A stretch of DNA of 64,000 nt from Phaeosaccion multiseriatum (GCA_965112735.1 OZ218957.1:806001-870000), one strand, 5' to 3'; positions 9,557-36,994 are shown, numbered from the stretch's first letter. Translations and numbers: made by a program. Notes: generated from the letters alone by a model not told the origin.

Positions 9557-12500
9557 ATGCCGCTGCCAGCTCGAGCTTCGGTTGGAGCTGAGGCCACTCC
9601 TGTCGCTGGCGAGGATCAGGAGGCGTTGCTCATTGGTCCCAACGCCAGAGCCTCTGACGCTCTCACGCTGGAGCTTACCCTCTCCCTGCAAGGGCTGCAG
9701 TTGGAGTCCGCCATTGTCGAGCAGCAGCAGAAGGCCCCATTATGGCTCAGTTATTCGTTCTTGGGCGTCATTGTGCAGACAGACCAGTTCACACAAGTAG
9801 CGGCGCCACCACCAGCAGCAGGAGCAGCAGCAGCGGGGGACGGTAGTGCTTCTGCTGACCAGGACCAGGACCAGGACCAGAAGGAGTCCTCCTTCACCCC
9901 GATCCGCGACACATACCGCCTTAAAGCCACAGTGGAGGATGTGACGCGCTTTCTCTCCGAGGCCTCCGTGCTGCACGTTCTCCTCTGCACCGACAAGAAG
10001 GTGCTGGCCAGCGCCGCCATTGACTTGCGCCAGCTGCTGCCCCAGCCACCTTCTCTGGCCACTGTAGCGGCTGCAGCAGGGGCTTCGGCGTCGGCAACGG
10101 CCCAGCTGGTGGCAGGGACGAGCTTCGATGGTCAGTTTCCCCTAGAAGAGATATCCTCCGAGGAGGGAGGAGGGGCGGCGGTGGGAGGCGGGGGGATACT
10201 GCCGGCTGGTAGGGTTTGGGTAGGGGCAGAGCTTCGGGCGACCGAGACAGCGTCGACTTCTCCTAGTCCGCCCCGTTCTGATACTGGCGCGCAACAACAG
10301 CAACAGCAACAGCAGCAGCAGCAGCAGCAGCGGCGTGCGTTTACGCTCGCGCCCGGATCACCACCTCCGCCACCGCCACAGCAGTTGGTGATACAGCAGC
10401 AGCAGTCCCCTACGGAAAGGAGGGCCTACCGCCTCTCGGTGGAGCTCTCCGCCATCAAGGACTTGGACAAGGCGGACTACGTCGTCGCCAAGTACAGCTA
10501 CACACACTTGGGTACCTCTGCCCCTGTCCGAACCGCCGTGGCGTGGGTGCCTCCACACGCACGGGTTGGCTTGGGCAACTCGGTGTGCACCTTTGAGTTC
10601 GGGGCGTCGCCAGAGCAGCTGCAGGATATTGTACACGCGCACCCCCTCGTAGTCTCTCTGTGTGCCAAGTCGCAGCACGCCGAGACTGAGATCGGGGTGG
10701 TGCAGCTCCCTCTTCAGGAACTGGTGGACTCTGCCATCTCCGGCTCCAGCGAGGGTATGGGGGGAGGGGGGGGGAGGTACTACCGCTGCCCGGAGACGTC
10801 GCACAACTTCAAGACCCGTGAGAAGTGCGATGCCTTTCAACGAGGGAGGAGGCGCAGGAGCGGTGGTGGTGGTGGTGGTGGTGGTGGTGGTGGGGACAGC
10901 GACGGCGAGGGGGGAGGGGGGGGGGCAGCAACACGAGCGCCGGTGTGTCCAGTCGAGGTGACCATTATGGATGACGACTTGGCTGTCATTCGCGCCGGAC
11001 CCGAGGAAGGGGAAGAACTCTTTGCAACGGCGGAGGAGAAGCAGAGGGATAGGCGGAGGCGAAGAGGGGAAGAGGAGGGACGGCAGGGCAGGGGCGGTGA
11101 AGGGGAGGGCGTGGTGAGCGGCAAGGCTAAGGCTCCTCCTCCTCGGCAGCTTTGTTCTCTCCATGTGATTATGATTTTGGAGGACCTCGGCCCTACTGAA
11201 AGAGGAGGGGAGGACACAGCAGCAGCAGCAGCAGCAGCAGGTGCTGAAAACCGCGCCACCCTTGCGCCAAATGGAGCAGCTGTGGGTCACGGCCACGGGG
11301 GAAACGTTGCCTCTGCTGCTACTGCTGCTGTTGCTGCTGGTGGTGCTGCTGCTGCGGGGCTGTCTCCCGTGTCTCCGAGCGTTTGGGAGGAATGGCGCCG
11401 CCGAGAGGAGGCGTCATGGGGAGACAAGTTGAGGGAGAAGGATGCTGCCCTGGAGGCCAAGTGGATAGCTAACGAGGCCGTCCGAAGCAGAGCGGTGGCG
11501 GCTCTACAGGCCGACTACGGTAAGCTTGAGGCAAAGCTTCGCAAGGCGCTGAGTGAGGTGGAAACGCGTGAACGGGCTTTGGCGGGCCGAGAGGCGGAGT
11601 TGCGCACCGATCACGCCACCAAGCTGGGGGAGTTGCAGCTGTTGCAGAGGCGTCTCAAGGAGGAGAGTAAGCACAGCGTGCAAATTGAGAAGCTCCAGCG
11701 CGAGGCTGCGGAGAGGCAGCTGCACGCCACACGCCTGCTCTTGACCAAGGCCGAGGGGAGGGCGCGGGCCGCTGAGGACGAGTTTGACAAATATAGAGCC
11801 ACGCAGAGGAAGACGTCGGAAGGGGCGCTGCGGCAGGTGCGTGCGTGTGGGTGCGTGCGTGTGGGTGCGTGCGTGTGGGTGCGTGCGTGTGGGTGCGTGC
11901 GTGTGGGTGCGTGCGTGTGGGTGCGTGCGTGTGGGTGCGTGCGTGTGGGTGCGTGCGTGTGGGTGCGTGCGTGTTGGGGGGTGGGGGCATGGGGGTGGGA
12001 GCCGGGGGGGCATGCGGCAGAAGTCAGCGGGGGGGAGAGAATACGACTGCCACGCACATCTGTCTCTGCCTGTCTTCCTCTGGTGAGCTCCGCGGGTGCC
12101 CTCCCCTGCATTGTGTGTAGTGTATGTGTGTATGCGTGTGTGTCTGTGTGTCTGTCTGGCTTTGTGTGTGTTTGTGTATGCGTGTGTGCGTCTATATTTA
12201 CGGTGCATGCCTCATCTATCCATCCATCCATCTATCCATCCATCCATCTATCCATCCATCCATCTATCCATCCATCCACCTATCTATCCGTCCATCTATC
12301 CATCCATCCACCCATCTATCCACCCATCTATCCACCCATCTATCCATCCATCCACCCATCTATCCATCCATCCGTCCATCCATCCATCCATCCATCCATC
12401 CATTTATCCATCCATCCATCCATCCGTCCATCCATCCGTCCATCCATCCATCCATCCATCCATCCATCCATCCATCGTCTATCCATCCATCCATCCATCT

Positions 12501-23990: not shown

Positions 23991-25230
23991 CTACAAGACT
24001 TCATTGGGTTGAAGCCCTTCCCTCCGCATCTCCTTCAGCAAGTCCAGCGCCTTCTCGTTGCTCTCCAGCCTTGCCGCAAGCAGAAATCGCAGAGTTGTAC
24101 GAGATTTGATCCGGTTGAAGCCCTTCCCTCCGCATCTCCTTTAGCAAGTCCAGCGCCTTCTCGTGCTCTCCAGCCTTGCCACAAGCAGAAATCGCAGAGT
24201 TGTACGAGAATTCATTGGGTTGAAGCCATTCCCTCCGCATCTCCTTCAGTAAGTCTAGCGCCTTCTCGTACTCTCCAGCCTTGCCGCAAGCAGAAATCGC
24301 AGAGCTGTACGAGAATTCATTGGGTTGAAGCCCTTCCCTCCGCATCTCCTTCAGCAAGCCAAGCGCCTTCTCGTACTCTCCAGCCTTGCCGCAAGCAGAA
24401 ATCGCAGAGCTGTACGAGATTTGATCCGGTTGAAGCCCTTCCCTCCGCATCTCCTTCAGCAAGTCCAGCGCCTTCTCGTGCTCTCCAGCCTTGCGGCAAG
24501 CAGAAATCGCACAGCTGTACGAGATTTGATTGGGTTGAAGCCCCTCCCTCCGCATCTCCTTCAGCAAGTCCAGCGCCTTCTCGTGCTCTCCAGCCTTGCC
24601 GCAAGCAGAAATCGCAGAGCTGTACGAGAATTCATTGGGTTGAAGCCATTCCCTCCGCATCTCCTTCAGTAAGTCAAGCGCCTTCTCGTACTCTCCAGCC
24701 TTGCCGCAAGCAGAAATCGCAGAGCTGTACGAGATTTGATCCGGTTGAAGTCCTTCTGCCCTCATCTCGTTGAGCAGGGCCACCGCGCCCTTCCATCGCC
24801 GAACTTTCCCCTTTTTTTTTTTTTTCTTTTTCTTCCCCTCTGCTTTTGCCTGCTCAATTGCCCTCGCCACCCCCTTCCAGTCGCGTGTATTTCCAAGCCT
24901 CTGGATCTCTTTGACCAACGCTATTTCTCTTCCCTTGGCCTCCCCCGCCTTTCTATCCCCGGATGCATTGAGCCTGGTTTCAAGGAGGCGGAGCGATTGA
25001 GTCGACGATCGTCGCTCAACAGGCACGGCGGCTGTGAGAATGGAGTTTTTCTCACGCATCTAGTCCTCCTGCTCCGACGGAAAGGACGCAAGGAGAAGCT
25101 CAAGTTCGTGTGTTGTGCTCCAGGAGTCACAGGGTGGCGAGTGCCTACTACCCACACGCTGGCGCGGTCCCATGTCATAGCACCATTAAAACCAGCATCA
25201 GCAGAGGTAGCACCAGCATCAGCAGAGGTA
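23991..25230 (-). pseudogene. P-class pentatricopeptide-repeat (PPR) gene with ~7 near-identical 35-aa repeats; frameshifted or degraded
   Basis: ORF 25059-24001 has repeats of SYSSAISACGKAGEYEKALDLLKEMRREGLQPN. There is a 1-nt insertion near 24057 in the last repeat, and a poly-A (poly-Lys) tract replaces part of the first repeat. The signal-peptide-like MLVLPLLMLVLMVL and transit-like ASVWVV segments lie in other frames upstream. Confidence 0.8.
24001..24752. repeat. 105-bp tandem repeat array (PPR-coding), ~7 units
   Basis: The unit ...GTTGAAGCCCTTCCCTCCGCATCTCCTTCAGCAAGTCCAGCGCCTTCTCGTGCTCTCCAGCCTTGCCGCAAGCAGAAATCGCAGAG... repeats at 105-nt spacing. Confidence 0.95.
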
Positions 25231-27362: not shown

Positions 27363-30300
27363 ATGGGTGAGTCGCCTGTCCAAGAAAAAAAAACTCCATT
27401 CCTTCCACCTACTCGCTTGTTCCGCCCTTCCCTCGCTCCCACTCCCGTGCCTTACTGATTTTCCGGTGCCTGCCTCTCGCTCTTTGCTTGCAGCAGCAGG
27501 GGATGGGGCTGCGGACGATGATCTGGGGGGCACAACCCCGTTGCAGCTCCTGCAGGATGAGTTTGCCAGCACGGACCAGGAAATCCGGCTGCAAGCGGTC
27601 AAGAGGGTCTCCGTGGTGGGAGAGGTCATGGGAACGGCCGCAACACGATCAGAGTTGATACCTGAGTTCATAGACAGTTGAGTATTGGACCCTGCGGAGG
27701 AATAGCGCGGCAGCATTGATGGCCCCCGGTCGGTCGTTGCCAGTGTTGTCCCACACGCGTTGCCTTCCTAAAGAAGAGCGTGGGTCTTCCATAACAAAGC
27801 GTGGGGCATCCAAGGCCTACGTCGGATGCTCTCGTCCCTCTCCTCGGCCGCTACCTTTCGCTTGTTAACGCTCTTCAGCCTTAAACTTCCCGCCCCCCTC
27901 TTTGAGCAGGGCCTCTCTCATCCTTCCGTCCTTTCATCATCTCACCACCCCGCCCCACCCCCCGCCTCCCTCTTCTTCCCTTCTTTATTGTTCCACAAGA
28001 GTTACATCCATCCTCCTCTCTCTTTTCCCCAGCGCTGCCTTACCGCTCTCCCCACTCCACCCTCCCCTTTTCCCGTTCTCCTACCATTAGAAATCGACAC
28101 TGCAGCCGACGACGACGAGATACTCCTAGCCTTGGCGCAGGAGCTTGGAGGCTTTGTACCAATCGTGGGCGGGGGGACCCACGCACATCTACTGTTGCCG
28201 GCGCTGGAGGGTTTAGCGGCAGTGGAGGAGACAGTAGTGAGGGAGAAAGCGGTGTGTAGTATAGCAAAGGTGGTAGAGGGGATGGAAGGCCACGACGACA
28301 AGGTAGGAGACATGGTGAAAGCGCTAAGCATCGGCGACTGGTTCACCGCTCGCGTGAGTGCGTGTGGGGCATATCCCTCGGCCTATGCGCACGTCAAGTC
28401 AGCAGAAGCCAGAGCACAGCTGCGGGCACAGTTTGAGGTGCTGTCCAAGGACGAGACACCAATGGTGCGGCGGTCTGCTGCCACCAGCGTAGGGGACCTG
28501 TTGCTGGTAGTGGAGGGGGAGTACGTGGCCGGAGAGCTAATGGTTGTGTTTAAGGGGCTCTGTTCGGACGATCAGGACAATGTTCGCATGCTTGCGGTGG
28601 AGCAGTGCTCCAAAGTGGCAGAATGCCTCATATCCAAGGGCTTGACCGCCGAGTGCGACGCACATGTCCTGCCCATTGTCAAGCACGCACTCGAGGACCG
28701 TTCGTGGAGGGTTCGGCGCCACATGGCCCGGGATTACGCCCGTCTCGGTCAGCAGGTACGTGTGTGTGGAAGGGGGAAGGGGTGAGAAGTTTCAGTTCAT
28801 GACCCCCCGAGTCTCGGGTAGGCGATGTTTATCGAGCTTCCATCCCCGACCATATGATTGTGTATCAAATCAGTGTAAGAGCTCAACGACGGTTACACAC
28901 AGTCTCCACAAGTCTCACACGAGGGCTGCCCTCTCTCCCTCTCCCTCCCTCTCTCTCTCTTGCCATCCCCGCTCTACCTCCCTTTCTGTCCGTTCTGTAG
29001 GTGGGGAGGGAGACCACCCAGGCGGAACTCGTGCAAGGATACGCGGGATTGCTGCAGGACCCAGAGACGGAGGTGCGGGCCGTGGCTATCAAGCACCTCT
29101 CCGCCTTCGTTGACTTACTGGGGAAGGACGTGTTTGCCACTCAGGTAAGCTTCACAAATGGCTGATTTTATCTTGTCTCTGTGTGCCTGTCTGCTGTTCT
29201 GTACTGCCGACCACGCTGCCCGTCTCCTCTCCTGTCGAGCCCTGTCCAGCGCTCCGGGTGAAGTGAAGCCCCACCCGTTCGCCGGCGTGAGACGAGACGC
29301 ACTTGTGTATGTCCTTGGTCTTCTTCTTCTTCCTCCTCCTCCTCCTCCACAACCAACCAGCCAACCAACCAACGAACCAACCAATCAAAGCACCCATTCA
29401 CGAAGCAACCAACTCCAACTCGCCCTGCCCACCCACCCACCACTCAACTGCCCTGCTCTGGTCTGCTCTCTGCTGTCAACCCCATTAGATCATGCCCTAC
29501 GTACAAGGCCTGGTGCAGGATATCAACCTGCCCGTCCGTGTGGCCCTGAGCCGCAGCTGCATGGACATGGCCCCTATGCTTGGGCAGACCGCCACCCAGG
29601 AACTCGTATTACCCATGCTGCAGACCTTCCTCAGGTGAGTGGGTGGGTACTAAGTCAAATGGGTGTGGGTGTGGGTGGTGTGTGTGTGTGTGGGTGGGTG
29701 GGTGGGTAGAAAGACAATGGGTGGGTTGTAAGTCAGTGCGTGGGTTGTAAGTCAGTGCGTGGGTGGGTGGGTAGGTGGGTAGTAAGACAATGGCTTGGTT
29801 GTAAGGCAATGGGTGGGTTGGGGGTTGGTTGGTTGGTTGGTTGGTTGGTTGGTTGGTTGGTTGGGGCGGAGTTGGAGCTTAGCGTCGAGTGTTGAGCATG
29901 TAGAGTGGAATGGGAGCTTAGCGTCGGACCGTTTCGGGTTGTTGCTTTCGGTGCAAAGTGAGATCCATCATCGCGATATGGGCTTGAGAGTGGTTTTGGC
30001 CTGACGTCACTATCAGTGCTGCAACTCTTCCTTCTAAGCTCACTTCCTGATTGACTTAAAGTGCTCTTTTTATCTCAATTCCTTATTGACTTACGTGCTC
30101 TCTTCCATCTCACTTCAGGGACGAGGCGCCGGAAGTTCGGCTGCATATCCTCGACAGGCTTGATGCGGTGGGGCCGTGGCTCAAGGGCATGGCGGAAGAG
30201 CTGATGCCCTATGTGCTGGACCTGGGCAAGAATAACATCTGGAGAGTGAGGAAAGCCGTCATGCTGGCTGTGCCGTTGCTGGCAGAAACGCTTGGGGCGG

Positions 30301-32130: not shown

Positions 32131-32758
32131 CTAGCAAAAGGCAATCAAACGGCGGTCGAAAAGTCTCTCTATGCACTGTAGAATGGCCGCGTTGCTCCTG
32201 TCCTCCTCCTCCTCATCCTCGTTGTCCTCCTCCCACTCTTCGCCTTCGCCCTCCTCGTCGTCCTCCTTCCACTCCTCCTCCTCCTCCTCCTCCTCCTCCT
32301 CCTCCTCCTCCTCCTCCTCCTCCTTCTCATCCTTATCCCACTCCTCCTCCTCCTCCTCTTCCTCCTCCTCATCATCCTCATCATCCTCCTCCTCCTCCTC
32401 CTCCTTCCCCCCTTCCGCCTGCAGCTGACTCGCAATGTCTCCGAGCGTCGTCCTCCCATCCACCGACTCTAACACCTCAAGCTCTAGCAAAGTGTCCAGC
32501 TCCACCCAGTCGCCGCCCCCTCGGGACGAAAACTGGCCCCCCTGGGGCTGCTGCAGGAACCGAACCCTCGCCACACCTCCATCCATCGTGGTTGACACCT
32601 CAGCCATACCTGCACCTAAGGCAGCAAGCACGGGCACCATCTGTTCCCAGCCCTCCACCCCTCCCTCCTTCTCATCTTCCTCCTCCAAGTCGACCTCGTC
32701 GCTGCCACCTGTGAACTTGCTGCTACCGTTAATACTACTACTCCTGCTACTACTACTG

Positions 32759-32820
<62 letters not shown>

Positions 32821-34110
32821 GCTACTACTGCTACTACCACCACCACCACCACCACCACCACCACTCCTACTACCACTGATTGGGTCCAGACTGGGAACCG
32901 TCAGGCTCCTCCTTCTTGCCGTGGCGGGACAAGGGCGCCTCTCCAGCACTCTCCCATGCATGACGAGCCGCTCGATGGCCCCCTTGGCCCCCAGGAAGGC
33001 TCTCAGCGCGTCTACCGGGCTGTCCACGATGGGTTCTCCCTTGACGTTGAAGGACGTGTTTAGCACCATGGGCACCCCACTCGCCTTGTGGAACGCCGAT
33101 ATCAGCCTGTCATCACAAAGTGTGTGCGTGTGTGTGTGCGTGTGTGTGCGTGTGTGTGTGTTTTTGTAAGTTATGATTGAGTGTGCAGATTGACAACCCT
33201 CCACTCCCCCTTCCAAAGCTATCCCATCTATACGACAGTGATAAAAAAAAAAATTGATATGCGGCAAGGTCACAATAAACCGAGAAAGAAAGACTCTCCC
33301 TCCCTCCCCCCCCCCTCCCTCCCCCCCTCCCTCCCTCCCTCCCTCCCTCCCTCCCTCCCTCCCTCCCTCCCTCCCTCCCTCCCTCCCCCTCTCCCTCCCT
33401 CCCTCCCTCGCACCTGTGATAGAGGGGGTTGTCTTCCCTCCTGACGGTCTGCAGCCGCGCCGATCCGTCCACATGACACACCGCAGGAATACGCTCCGCC
33501 CTCCCTTCCTTAGCGAAGGCGGTCATGGACATAAAGGGAGAGGAGAGGTGGTCTCGGTCTCCCCCTCCTCCTCCTCCTCCTCCTCCTCCTTCTCCTCCCT
33601 CCTCCCCCTCCCCCCCCTGCCCCCCCTGTTGGCCCTGCTCAAACCACTCCGCCGCCTCCTCTTGCAGCACGGAGGGAGCGAAGGGCCGAAAGTCCTCCCT
33701 CCGCTTGACATTGTCATTGATGTGCTTGACCATGCCCTCTCGCCTCGGGTCGGCAAGCAACGACCGAGAGCCCAATGCCCGTGGTCCGAACTCCGACCGT
33801 CCTTGGAACCAAGCCACCACACCGCCCTCCGCTAGCACCCGAGCGGTGTCTATAACCAAGGCGTCCTCTTCGTCTTTATCAGTACTGCCCCTGTTGCCAG
33901 CTGCACTCTCCTGGGAGGAGGAGGAGGAGGAGGAGGAGGAGGAAAGCTTGTACTGCTGCTTCTCCTCCAGCCATGGAGAAAACTCCTCAATGGCTGCCTC
34001 CACGTCAGCCTCGGTCCACCCCCTTCCAGCGTAAGGTGCCATCGGGGACACCCACTGAGGGGTGGAAGAACGACCTCCTGCCGGCTCTTCGGTCGGTTGC
34101 TGTGCCACCA

Positions 34111-34144
<34 letters not shown>

Positions 34145-34200
34145 GTGGTGGTGCCAGTGGAGTCCAAATGCCGCACATCCGACCTGCACACAGAGAGAGC

Positions 34201-34240
<40 letters not shown>

Positions 34241-34302
34241 GTCAGACAGATAGACAGACAGATAGACAAACATACAGACAGACAGACAGACAGACAGACG
34301 GG

Positions 34303-34334
<32 letters not shown>

Positions 34335-34402
34335 TAGACAAACAGACAGACAGACAGATAGATAGACAGACAGATAGACAGACAGACAGACAGACAGACA
34401 GG

Positions 34403-34456
<54 letters not shown>

Positions 34457-34497
34457 GTCAAACAGACAGACAGACAGAGACGTAAGCACACAGACAA

Positions 34498-34550
<53 letters not shown>

Positions 34551-34755
34551 GACGTAAGCACACAGACAAACAAACAGACACAGACAAACAGACACAGACA
34601 CAGACAAACAAACAGACACGGACACAAACAAACAGACACAGACACAGAGGGAGGGAGATGAGCACGCAAGGCGTGTCAGCGACCACCACCACCACCACGA
34701 CCACCACCACCACGACCACCACTATCACTACCACCACCACCATCACCATCACCAC

Positions 34756-34796
<41 letters not shown>

Positions 34797-35639
34797 CCAC
34801 CACCATGCCACCCACCACAACCACCACCTCTCTCGTCACCCACCGCGATGCCCTCGTCCCCCGGGCAGGCCGGAATGAACACCTGTTCAAAGCCGAGCTC
34901 TCTGGTGAGCCTCCCATTGAGCACTGAATTGAGCGCCACCCCGCCGCAGAACACAAGGTTCTTTGCTCCCGTCTTCTCCTTCAGTCTACGCACAAAGTCC
35001 ATGGCAACGTGCTCAAGGTCTTGCTGCACTGTCGCGGCCACCTGTGCGTAGAAGGGCCGGAGGAAGAGCTCCCCTCCATCCTCCCCCTCCTCCTCATCAT
35101 CCTCCTCCTCCTCCTCCTCCCCCCCCGTCGCCGTGGTGGTGGTGGTGGTGGTGGTGGGTTTCAAAGTGCCCACCTTGTTGTTCGGACACGGCAGAGCATG
35201 CAGAGCCTCCCTCCGCACGGCGAAGCTCTCCTCCTCGGCCTCTTCTCTCCTCCCCGCTGCGAAGCTCTCCTCCTCGGCCTCTTCTCTCCTCCCCGCTCTC
35301 GTTGTCCTCCCTCGCTTTTCTGCTGCTGCCCCCTTGTCACCCGCCTCCTGCTCCTCCTCCTTCTCCTGCTCCTCCTCCTGCTGCTGCTCTTCCTCCCCAC
35401 CTTCCCCAACCCTCGGCAGCAGAGACCCCAACATAAAGCTGGGAGGACAGTAAGGTGATAATGGTGATGAGGATGATGTCTGCCGCTGCGGCGATCGCCA
35501 GACGCTTGCCCAAGGCCCAAGGCCCATCACCTTTCCGCAGCTGTTCCAGTCTCCGAAGATGTGCGAGCTGACAGAGGGGTAGGGGGGGGAGGAAAGGGAG
35601 GGAGGGAAGGGGGGGAGGAGAGAGCTAAGGGCCCGGGGG

Positions 35640-35694
<55 letters not shown>

Positions 35695-35715
35695 TAGACA
35701 GATAGACAGACACAC

Positions 35716-35782
<67 letters not shown>

Positions 35783-35795
35783 TAGACAGACACAC

Positions 35796-35834
<39 letters not shown>

Positions 35835-36108
35835 TAGACAGACACACACACAGAGAGAGAGACAGAAAAGGAGTACATGCATATGTGGGAGCTCACCCAG
35901 GGGGGGAGACGAGACGCGTCGAGAGAAGACACAAGCCTACCCATGGCCCAGGGCAGAGACACGCCCACGCACCTGATTCGGCTGTACACGGCCCCCACAC
36001 TCTCCATGTTCTCGAAGCCGTGGTTGAAGAGCTCGGACGGGGAACGCTCCTCAATCCAGCGCTTGTACACCGGGAGGAGCACCTCCATGGGACCGGCGCC
36101 GTTGCGGC

Positions 36109-36139
<31 letters not shown>

Positions 36140-36994
36140 AATTCTAGCGTCATCCGTCTCAGGACGCCGACTGAAAGTGAAGGCACTCTCCCCTTCTCGA
36201 TAGTCCTTGTACGAAAGCAGCTGAGGCGGGACCTGTGTCATTGCTCGGGCAGCCCCCTCTCCTTGGGCCTGCAGCAGACCCAAGTCCGTGTAGTAGTCCT
36301 TCTCCTGCTCTGCCTCTGCCGCCGCCATGGCCGAGTGGAGCTCCCCCATCCCGTCCATCACCACCACGAGGCCCTCGTCGAAGGGAGCCTGTGATACGCC
36401 GCACCAGGCATGTGCCATGTGATGGCTCAGCTCCAAGTGGGCCGATGCGTCGGGCAGCAGGTTGGCGTCGTCCAGGTAGGACTCCTCATACTGCCCCATG
36501 GCCACGCTCCAGGGCAGGCGCTGCTCGAAGGGAGCCACACGGAAGTGGTGGTTGTTGGAGACGACCACGTCAATGTCGCCAATCTCTGCCCCGATGTGCT
36601 CGAGTCCAGCTTCCACCACTTCACCGATGTCGCCTCCGTCGTTCTTGGCCCGCGTGAGCCGCTCTTTGGATGCTGCGAAGAGCACCTGCCCCGTAACGGA
36701 GGAGATGATGGCCACCGAGGCATCGTGGCTGTACTTGTTGCAACCCACAATGAGGCCACCGTTGCTGCCTTCGTTGTTATGAAGGGGGCCACTGCTGCTG
36801 CTGCTGCTGCCGCTGCTTGCAGTTGTACTCCATCTATTGCTGCTGGTACTGCTGGAGAGAGAGGTGGAGACTCTCGCGGAGGCGCGGAGTGGAAGGGACG
36901 CAGCAGAAGGTGGCCCTGTCAAGAAGCTGCTTGCCTGCCTTGCGACGTGCAGCAGCACCAGCAGCACCGCGACCCGTGGTTGCGATCGCATCAT
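32131..36994 (-). CDS. NodU/CmcH/TobZ-family O-carbamoyltransferase with bipartite plastid presequence and C-terminal PqqD-like helix module, ~1163 aa
   Basis: Exons 36994-35973, 35567-34844, 34183-33414, 33106-32131 (3492 nt, in frame). Motifs [107 protein letters not shown]-terminus [25 protein letters not shown] followed by a Ser-rich transit peptide. Confidence 0.92.

Follow-up and report, generated by a model that had tools for sequence, protein, structure and literature searches.

Carbamoyltransferases of the NodU/TobZ type are known from bacteria, where they tailor antibiotics, toxins and Nod factors. A 64,000-nucleotide stretch of the Phaeosaccion multiseriatum genome (GCA_965112735.1, OZ218957.1:806001-870000; hereafter the window) carries a gene for a protein of this kind on its minus strand, and the locus raises the question of what such an enzyme would do in an alga: whether the gene is intact, where its product would be sent and what it would carbamoylate. 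Judged from its sequence, the gene is a eukaryotic, intron-containing member of the class III NodU/TobZ-type carbamoyltransferases. For the product, about an even chance is given to the following reading, drawn by analogy with GdmN (geldanamycin/ansamitocin 7-O-carbamoyltransferase, PDB 7VX0): it would be imported into the plastid and act there on a small molecule as an active, GdmN-like dimer. The alternatives concern the gene model, the destination of the protein and the nature of the acceptor, and each is weighed below with the evidence that bears on it.

The gene and its catalytic core

Exon borders were set by homology and canonical GT-AG sites, and similarity searches were made exon by exon. 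In Pfam, PF02543 (Carbam_trans_N) falls on exons 1 and 2, at profile positions 2-66 and 275-341 of 346, and PF16861 (Carbam_trans_C) falls on exons 3 and 4, at positions 1-115 (E 1.2e-43) and 117-169 of 170 (E 9e-12). As the second profile ends exon 3 at position 115 and resumes in exon 4 at position 117, its match is unbroken across intron 3. Exon searches of PDB sequences matched NovN (novobiocin, PDB 9S2T), VtdB (PDB 7XB6), GdmN and TobZ (tobramycin O-carbamoyltransferase, PDB 3VEN). An earlier reading of the DNA from sequence alone (hereafter the sequence-only reading) had assigned both the Kae1-like and the YrdC-like domain of NodU to this gene; Pfam places them on the four exons, and each of the motifs then quoted was found in the sequence.

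In the alignment of exon 1 to GdmN, His90 (in KYSHDAS) stands opposite H27, while H191, H195 and D214 stand opposite H133, H137 and D156; in GdmN these are the catalytic base and the iron ligands, respectively (PMC9633730). The TobZ counterpart of the catalytic-base His is H14, which is mutated in the H14N variant 3VEX. Furthermore, the Asp of PGDEG aligns with the clade-invariant D404 in the NovN and clade alignments, and the YrdC-like motifs GPRALG, RPFAP, HVDGSAR and NTSFN are present, with the invariant R497, D575 and N609-N613 kept. By comparison with solved relatives, the YrdC-like domain would form carbamoyl-AMP from ATP and carbamoyl phosphate, and the Kae1-like domain would then carbamoylate the acceptor at a hydroxyl (or amine), using the iron site and His90 as base. 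Both enzyme activity and this carbamoyl-AMP chemistry are what we infer from family membership. The NCBIfam NodU model gave partial matches (E 9.5e-24 on exon 3). Identity as NodU, SxtI or HypF was rejected, the NCBIfam scores lying well under the equivalog cut-offs (for NodU, 84 against 1000 bits).

The sequence-only reading had also described an intact gene of four exons and about 1163 amino acids, and re-deriving it from the sequence returned the same length with three GT-AG introns. All three splice junctions agree with the consensus of 79 relatives (including PGDxGIAVGCA and PLYHxLIxAF), and 63 of the 64 clade-invariant columns are kept in the exon-by-exon alignment; the remaining one, G410, was seen by eye at the exon 2/3 junction. 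Repeats have a period of 4 in the introns, where they are microsatellites, and of 3 in the low-complexity runs of the exons (Ser, Thr, Gln and Glu/Asp), so the assignment of exons and introns fits. The reading frame is open across all inserts of the model, and the gene is present in a single copy, being the sole Carbam_trans_C match in the 67-Mb, 22-contig assembly.

Alternatively, the model could be partly wrong, with inserts that are in truth unrecognised introns, or the gene could be silent or unused. Orthologues are 750-930 amino acids long, so that about 250 residues of the 1163 are species-specific, low-complexity inserts; the acidic loop near the C-terminus is modelled with low confidence; and no RNA reads were placed on the locus, the runs that contain it being DNA-like. 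In the metatranscriptome run X1, the match at the locus is limited to a 33-base repeat. Further introns could in principle be hidden within the triplet-repeat inserts. Against this stand the inserts themselves, which stay in frame with period 3 whereas the introns have period 4, the retention of all clade-invariant residues, the three junctions that match the consensus and the fact that this is the only copy in the genome. A faulty model or an unused gene is considered very unlikely.

Presequence and predicted plastid import

The signal peptide ending in ASS/F (the slash marks the cut) and the Ser-rich stretch that had been described at the N-terminus are present, in the same form as in PsbO, light-harvesting complex (LHC) proteins and many orthologues. 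Controls from the same genome with a like presequence are PsbO (GMATA/FQPS) and several LHC genes (GCASA/FVAP), and about 40 relatives have a signal peptide followed by A/F or A/W. The mature domain begins at about residue 81, where the alignment to bacterial enzymes starts. An ochrophyte plastid-type bipartite presequence with an ASAFAP-type site is supported for this protein on such sequence evidence, and import of the enzyme into the plastid appears quite likely.

The same presequence could lead only to the endoplasmic reticulum and secretory path or to the periplastidial space, in which case the substrate of the enzyme would be a compound that is secreted or displayed at the cell surface, such as a glycan, much as NodU tailors Nod factors. 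This location is kept as an alternative because the post-signal extension of some relatives (orthologues P0177, P0098, P0007 and P0002) is very short, and short for a transit peptide. Here, however, ASS/F is followed by 57 Ser/Thr-rich and nearly acid-free residues, as in the PsbO and LHC controls, and Phe or Trp at +1 is recurrent among the orthologues. The red-algal members (Gracilaria, Hildenbrandia and Porphyridium), for which a signal peptide is not needed, carry N-terminal extensions of 35-50 amino acids, which start with MIAF/MITF in the first two. In addition, the named members come without exception from red algae or from algae whose plastids are of red origin. A purely secretory or periplastidial destination is accordingly rated as decidedly unlikely.

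A predicted PqqD/RRE fold at the C-terminus

Used as a single query, the C-terminus gave no Pfam domain match, and PDB sequences gave only acidic low-complexity matches, so the domain is visible only through its homologues. A full-library search with exon 3 recovered 11,332 relatives, and among the best 150 of these there are 48 with at least 100 residues after NTSFN, compared to about 40 residues in canonical enzymes. The tails of the relatives align with the tail found here and share the pattern SEV…G…RVR…W.eL.d.LeLevLe..DG.t.v.eL…[variable acidic loop]…L..Ly..rLIsf. A profile built from 30 tails placed PqqD structures on top (5SXY 7e-5, 5VRD 2.4e-4, 3G2B 2.6e-4), above generic winged-helix regulators. 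Similarly, a profile of 69 tails, from which the protein's own sequence had been left out, found 3G2B (2.9e-4), a lasso-peptide PqqD chaperone (1.3e-3), 5SXY and LynD. Individual tails compared with Pfam matched PqqD (PF05402) most often, in 5 of 30 cases and weakly (best E 0.0019), and in a search with a protein language model the leading clusters were those of MftB and PqqD, though the score was low (0.78).

The AlphaFold2 model of the domain, made with an alignment, has strands at residues 10-13, 18-23, 29-36 and 50-54, then helices at 57-65, 72-88 and 156-168. It contains 70 residues with a predicted local distance difference test (pLDDT) score of at least 90 and shows the acidic insert as a loose loop. 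Fold matches of the model are the recognition elements (RREs) of ribosomally synthesised and post-translationally modified peptide (RiPP) systems, GdmN residues 577-666 and NovN residues 579-667. Strictly defined, an RRE is a winged helix with strands first and then three helices (PMC12710340), and this is the order in the predicted structure. A PqqD/RRE-like winged helix interrupted by an acidic insert had been proposed from the sequence; two tail profiles and the AlphaFold2 fold agree on it, and a PqqD/RRE fold for the C-terminal module is supported by the model.

Small molecule or peptide as acceptor

The closest named orthologue, from Chrysoparadoxa (767 amino acids), was modelled at full length with 79 sequences, giving a pLDDT of 91.8 and a predicted template modelling score (pTM) of 0.91. 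In rigid superposition, 601 residues of this model matched GdmN and 585 matched NovN, reaching model residue 761, whereas the match to TobZ covered only 509 residues and stopped at residue 650, before the C-terminal domain. As the superposition runs through the tail for GdmN and NovN and not for TobZ, the algal enzymes have the three-domain architecture of GdmN and NovN. The C-terminal domain of GdmN makes the homodimer and is required for activity, and TobZ is a monomer (PMC9633730). By analogy, the algal domain most probably works as the auxiliary domain of GdmN and NovN does: it would hold two chains face to face and help to shut the pocket around the substrate. On this reading, the enzyme would carbamoylate a small molecule and not a peptide, probably one shared by red algae and the algae that have plastids of red origin.

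A different role for the domain would be that of a working RRE, which docks a leader-like stretch of some peptide or protein in the plastid, so that the enzyme carbamoylates it at a Ser, Thr, Tyr or Lys residue. PqqD and the lasso-peptide PqqD chaperone are the best profile matches, and the MftB/PqqD families came first in the language-model search, both of which favour this role. Fusions of an RRE with a carbamoyltransferase do exist, being listed without study by RRE-Finder (2025), which accepts RRE-like folds in eukaryotes only for JmjC fusions of fish and algae (PMC12710340). Furthermore, the NodU-like StdF of a Streptomyces RiPP pathway carbamoylates a peptide lysine to form homocitrulline, and crocagin is named as the sole other such case (2026 preprint; PMC13174530). 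Radical S-adenosylmethionine (SAM)/SPASM genes also adjoin that of P0071, a more distant homologue from bacteria which has this tail too.

These likenesses have to be set against the solved enzymes of like layout. Since the substrates of GdmN and NovN are small molecules, a peptide substrate does not follow from the fold alone, and the GdmN domain makes a dimer (PMC9633730). A common fold is no proof of peptide binding, a candidate peptide is not known in algae, and neither a precursor peptide nor a RiPP enzyme is found beside six same-clade members in Planctomycetota. The peptide or protein substrate that the sequence-only reading had drawn from the RRE fold is a weak claim in view of the shared layout of GdmN and NovN and these six loci, and a docking function of the domain is regarded as unlikely. 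A RiPP-type, RRE-guided peptide or protein carbamoyltransferase kept in plastids across red algae, ochrophytes, haptophytes and chromerids is slightly less likely again. If it were real, it would bring a post-translational modification of the bacterial RiPP type into the plastids of eukaryotes.

Several observations weigh against the GdmN-like, small-molecule enzyme preferred here. Identity in the catalytic core is 28-30% to GdmN and NovN and 31% to TobZ, equally far from both kinds, and the shared layout might be convergent. GdmN and NovN are absent from both tail profile searches at E values up to 10 (HMMER). In sequence the tail resembles true PqqD more closely than it does GdmN, so the domain could still be a working peptide binder, and StdF, which uses ATP and carbamoyl phosphate, demonstrates that the family can modify peptides (PMC13174530). 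In a phmmer alignment of modest accuracy, GdmN residues 80-82, which include its 'keystone' Tyr82, face a gap, a weak negative. A two-copy prediction of the C-terminal domain, in a run that left the alignment unused, returned an uncertain fold and speaks neither for nor against a dimer. Neither the neighbours in the window nor the Planctomycetota neighbourhoods yielded a candidate acceptor. Finally, no splice joints were found in X19, X20 and X22, the only sequencing runs with the locus, in which DNA-like contigs cross the exon/intron borders.

Relatives, distribution and origin

The named eukaryotic members of the clade come from Gracilaria, Porphyridium, Hildenbrandia, Ectocarpus, Chrysoparadoxa, Heterosigma, Attheya, Pinguiococcus, Prymnesium, Chromera and Vitrella, and each of these organisms belongs to the red algae or has a plastid of red origin. 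When the Chrysoparadoxa protein served as query in a word search, orthologues came from Vitrella, Ectocarpus, an ochromonad, Heterosigma, Attheya, Pinguiococcus and Prymnesium. With the same query, many proteins from metagenome-assembled genomes (MAGs) of marine Planctomycetota were found, which are about 700 amino acids long, have no repeat inserts and share 41-45% identity over 90-96% of the length. This distribution is consistent with a gene that travelled together with red plastids.

In a FastTree phylogeny of 180 sequences, the algal and Planctomycetota enzymes form one clade (support 100), with the tail in nearly all members, and exon 3 of the present gene falls beside a diatom-containing group (support 86). 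The Planctomycetota are nested in the eukaryotes in this tree, beside haptophytes. An IQ-TREE analysis under the site-heterogeneous LG+C20 model with an outgroup instead placed the Planctomycetota (support 95) as sister to a weakly supported eukaryotic clade (83) of red algae, haptophytes and a group of ochrophytes plus chromerids. As the two trees disagree on the position of the Planctomycetota, no direction of transfer is claimed. That the gene was transferred between algae and Planctomycetota is likely, and a bacterial derivation of the algal enzyme is possible.

Outside the clade, PqqD-like tails are found here and there on other carbamoyltransferases, such as that of an Asgard MAG and P0071. 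In addition, there is a second eukaryotic subfamily (P0016, P0029, P0045, P0051, P0087, P0182 and P0263), the tail of which is longer (200-340 amino acids), contains LPS.LHL.ILQLLQ as a motif and closes with an additional …LF.G..V.DLR; the one copy in the genome studied here is of the other type.

The locus combines a plastid-type signal with a PqqD-like tail, and the analysis gave it no place in an algal clade of known function; the three findings that would have spoken against the sequence-only reading thus did not emerge. Its claim of an undescribed pathway also stands as far as the literature goes, since a search on the algal family returned no paper describing it; likewise, none was found that links GdmN with PqqD. 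Hits labelled 'SxtI NodU/CmcH-related' have been tabulated in the non-toxic dinoflagellate Scrippsiella (PMC4860509), and these may belong to the plastid-type family and not to saxitoxin synthesis. A conserved clade in red-plastid lineages together with plastid-type presequences suggests that algal plastids carry out a carbamoylation step which, as far as was found, is undescribed. As such, a kind of enzyme otherwise known as bacterial is represented here by a distinct, conserved clade that is eukaryotic, plastid-type, widespread and unstudied. The orthologues of Chrysoparadoxa (CAM9789608.1, insert-free), Ectocarpus, Prymnesium and diatoms such as Attheya, and the insert-free versions of about 700 amino acids from Planctomycetota, offer starting material for its study.

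Features of the locus and gene neighbourhoods

The coordinates of the gene and its parts are collected in Table 1. The tetranucleotide arrays of the introns are (AGAC)57 at 35640-35866, (ACAG)108 at 34190-34618 and (CTCC)29 at 33296-33409 in window positions, and intron 2 begins with a period-3 array (34682-34828), which is open in frame past the donor site. Neighbouring frames in the window encode a pentatricopeptide repeat (PPR) protein (PPR_2 E 2.8e-70) at 24001-25059 on the minus strand and a HEAT-repeat protein at 27826-28785 on the plus strand. For neither is a connection with the carbamoyltransferase evident, and neither suggests a pathway.

Table 1. Parts of the carbamoyltransferase gene, numbered from the first nucleotide of the window.
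Feature	Position	Strand	Description
Whole gene	36994..32131	minus	4 exons, 1163 codons, coding length 3492 nt
Exon 1	35973..36994	minus	ATG at 36994; presequence and first part of Kae1-like domain (KYSHDAS, HHMAH, VMDGMGE); Pfam Carbam_trans_N
Signal peptide, aa 1-23	36926..36994	minus	Basic n-region, hydrophobic VAVLLVLL core, A-x-S at the cut, F at +1 (ASS/F); read from sequence
Transit-peptide-like stretch, aa 24-80 (57 residues)	36755..36925	minus	44% Ser+Thr, 3 basic residues, 1 acidic residue
Intron 1	35568..35972	minus	405 nt, GT-AG; largely (AGAC)n array; junction matches clade consensus
Exon 2	34844..35567	minus	Remainder of Kae1-like domain (GGVALN, PGDEG) and species-specific low-complexity insert; Pfam Carbam_trans_N 275-341/346; NovN alignment
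Intron 2	34184..34843	minus	660 nt, GT-AG; largely (ACAG)n array; junction GIA/VGCAA matches clade consensus
Exon 3	33414..34183	minus	Linker and YrdC-like domain; Pfam Carbam_trans_C E 1.2e-43; PDB sequence matches NovN, VtdB, GdmN, TobZ
Intron 3	33107..33413	minus	307 nt, GT-AG; (CTCC)n array; Pfam match spans positions 115 to 117
Exon 4	32131..33106	minus	Last part of YrdC-like domain (NTSFN), Ser run, C-terminal domain, TAG at 32133-32131
Ser-run linker	32733..32877	minus	Period-3 repeat joining catalytic core and C-terminal domain; Ser run absent here in relatives
C-terminal PqqD/RRE-fold domain (predicted)	32134..32658	minus	Strands then three helices, acidic loop inside; relatives' tails, profiles, AlphaFold model, fold matches
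Acidic insert, ~70 aa	32197..32406	minus	Between helix 2 and helix 3; period-3 repeat; pLDDT about 50-60; short or none in relatives

Six contigs of marine Planctomycetota were long enough to read around the carbamoyltransferase gene, namely L020-L024 (downstream genes at about 10100-10850) and the P0178 contig; those of P0065, P0100 and P0060 were too short. In all six, an Nfu-type iron-sulfur carrier (Nfu_N+NifU, about 200 amino acids) lies downstream on the same strand, 8-100 bp or one gene away, and no precursor-like gene or RiPP enzyme was found in any of these neighbourhoods. The adjacency of carbamoyltransferase and Nfu may reflect a functional pair or only lineage synteny. Co-transfer of Nfu with the enzyme was considered and dropped, as NifU-domain similarity in the Phaeosaccion genome is limited to a weak match (E 3e-4). 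Outside the clade, the contig of P0071 (L014, 1-16000) has three radical SAM genes (one of them SPASM), glycosyltransferases, methyltransferases and a polysaccharide deacetylase around the PqqD-tailed carbamoyltransferase, a setting compatible with a RiPP cluster as well as with a glycan cluster.

Comparison with known systems

NodU and NolO, which act on Nod factors, and SxtI of the saxitoxin pathway belong to the same Pfam families as the algal enzyme. To our knowledge, none of the three has the C-terminal domain, and we know of no report of their substrates from these algae. StdF, compared with the algal gene by description only, is fused to an S8/S53 peptidase and not to a PqqD-like domain, and belongs to a bacterial cluster with a precursor. 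PqqD proteins and RREs (3G2B and 5SXY; LynD 4V1V; TruD 4BS9; TbiB1 5V1V) are stand-alone or sit in RiPP enzymes and bind leader peptides, whereas the algal domain, without a known partner peptide, is fused C-terminally to a eukaryotic carbamoyltransferase and contains an acidic loop of 70 amino acids.

Among the solved carbamoyltransferases, TobZ and VtdB end about 40 residues past NTSFN and are without a C-terminal domain. GdmN and NovN are tailoring enzymes of actinobacterial secondary metabolism and, unlike the algal enzyme, are without a targeting signal. Nevertheless, their tail domain lies at the same position in the protein as the algal one. The auxiliary domain of about 100 amino acids that follows the YrdC-like domain in the GdmN-type subclade (GdmN, Asm21, NovN and Orf7*) is a feature that the algal enzyme has too.

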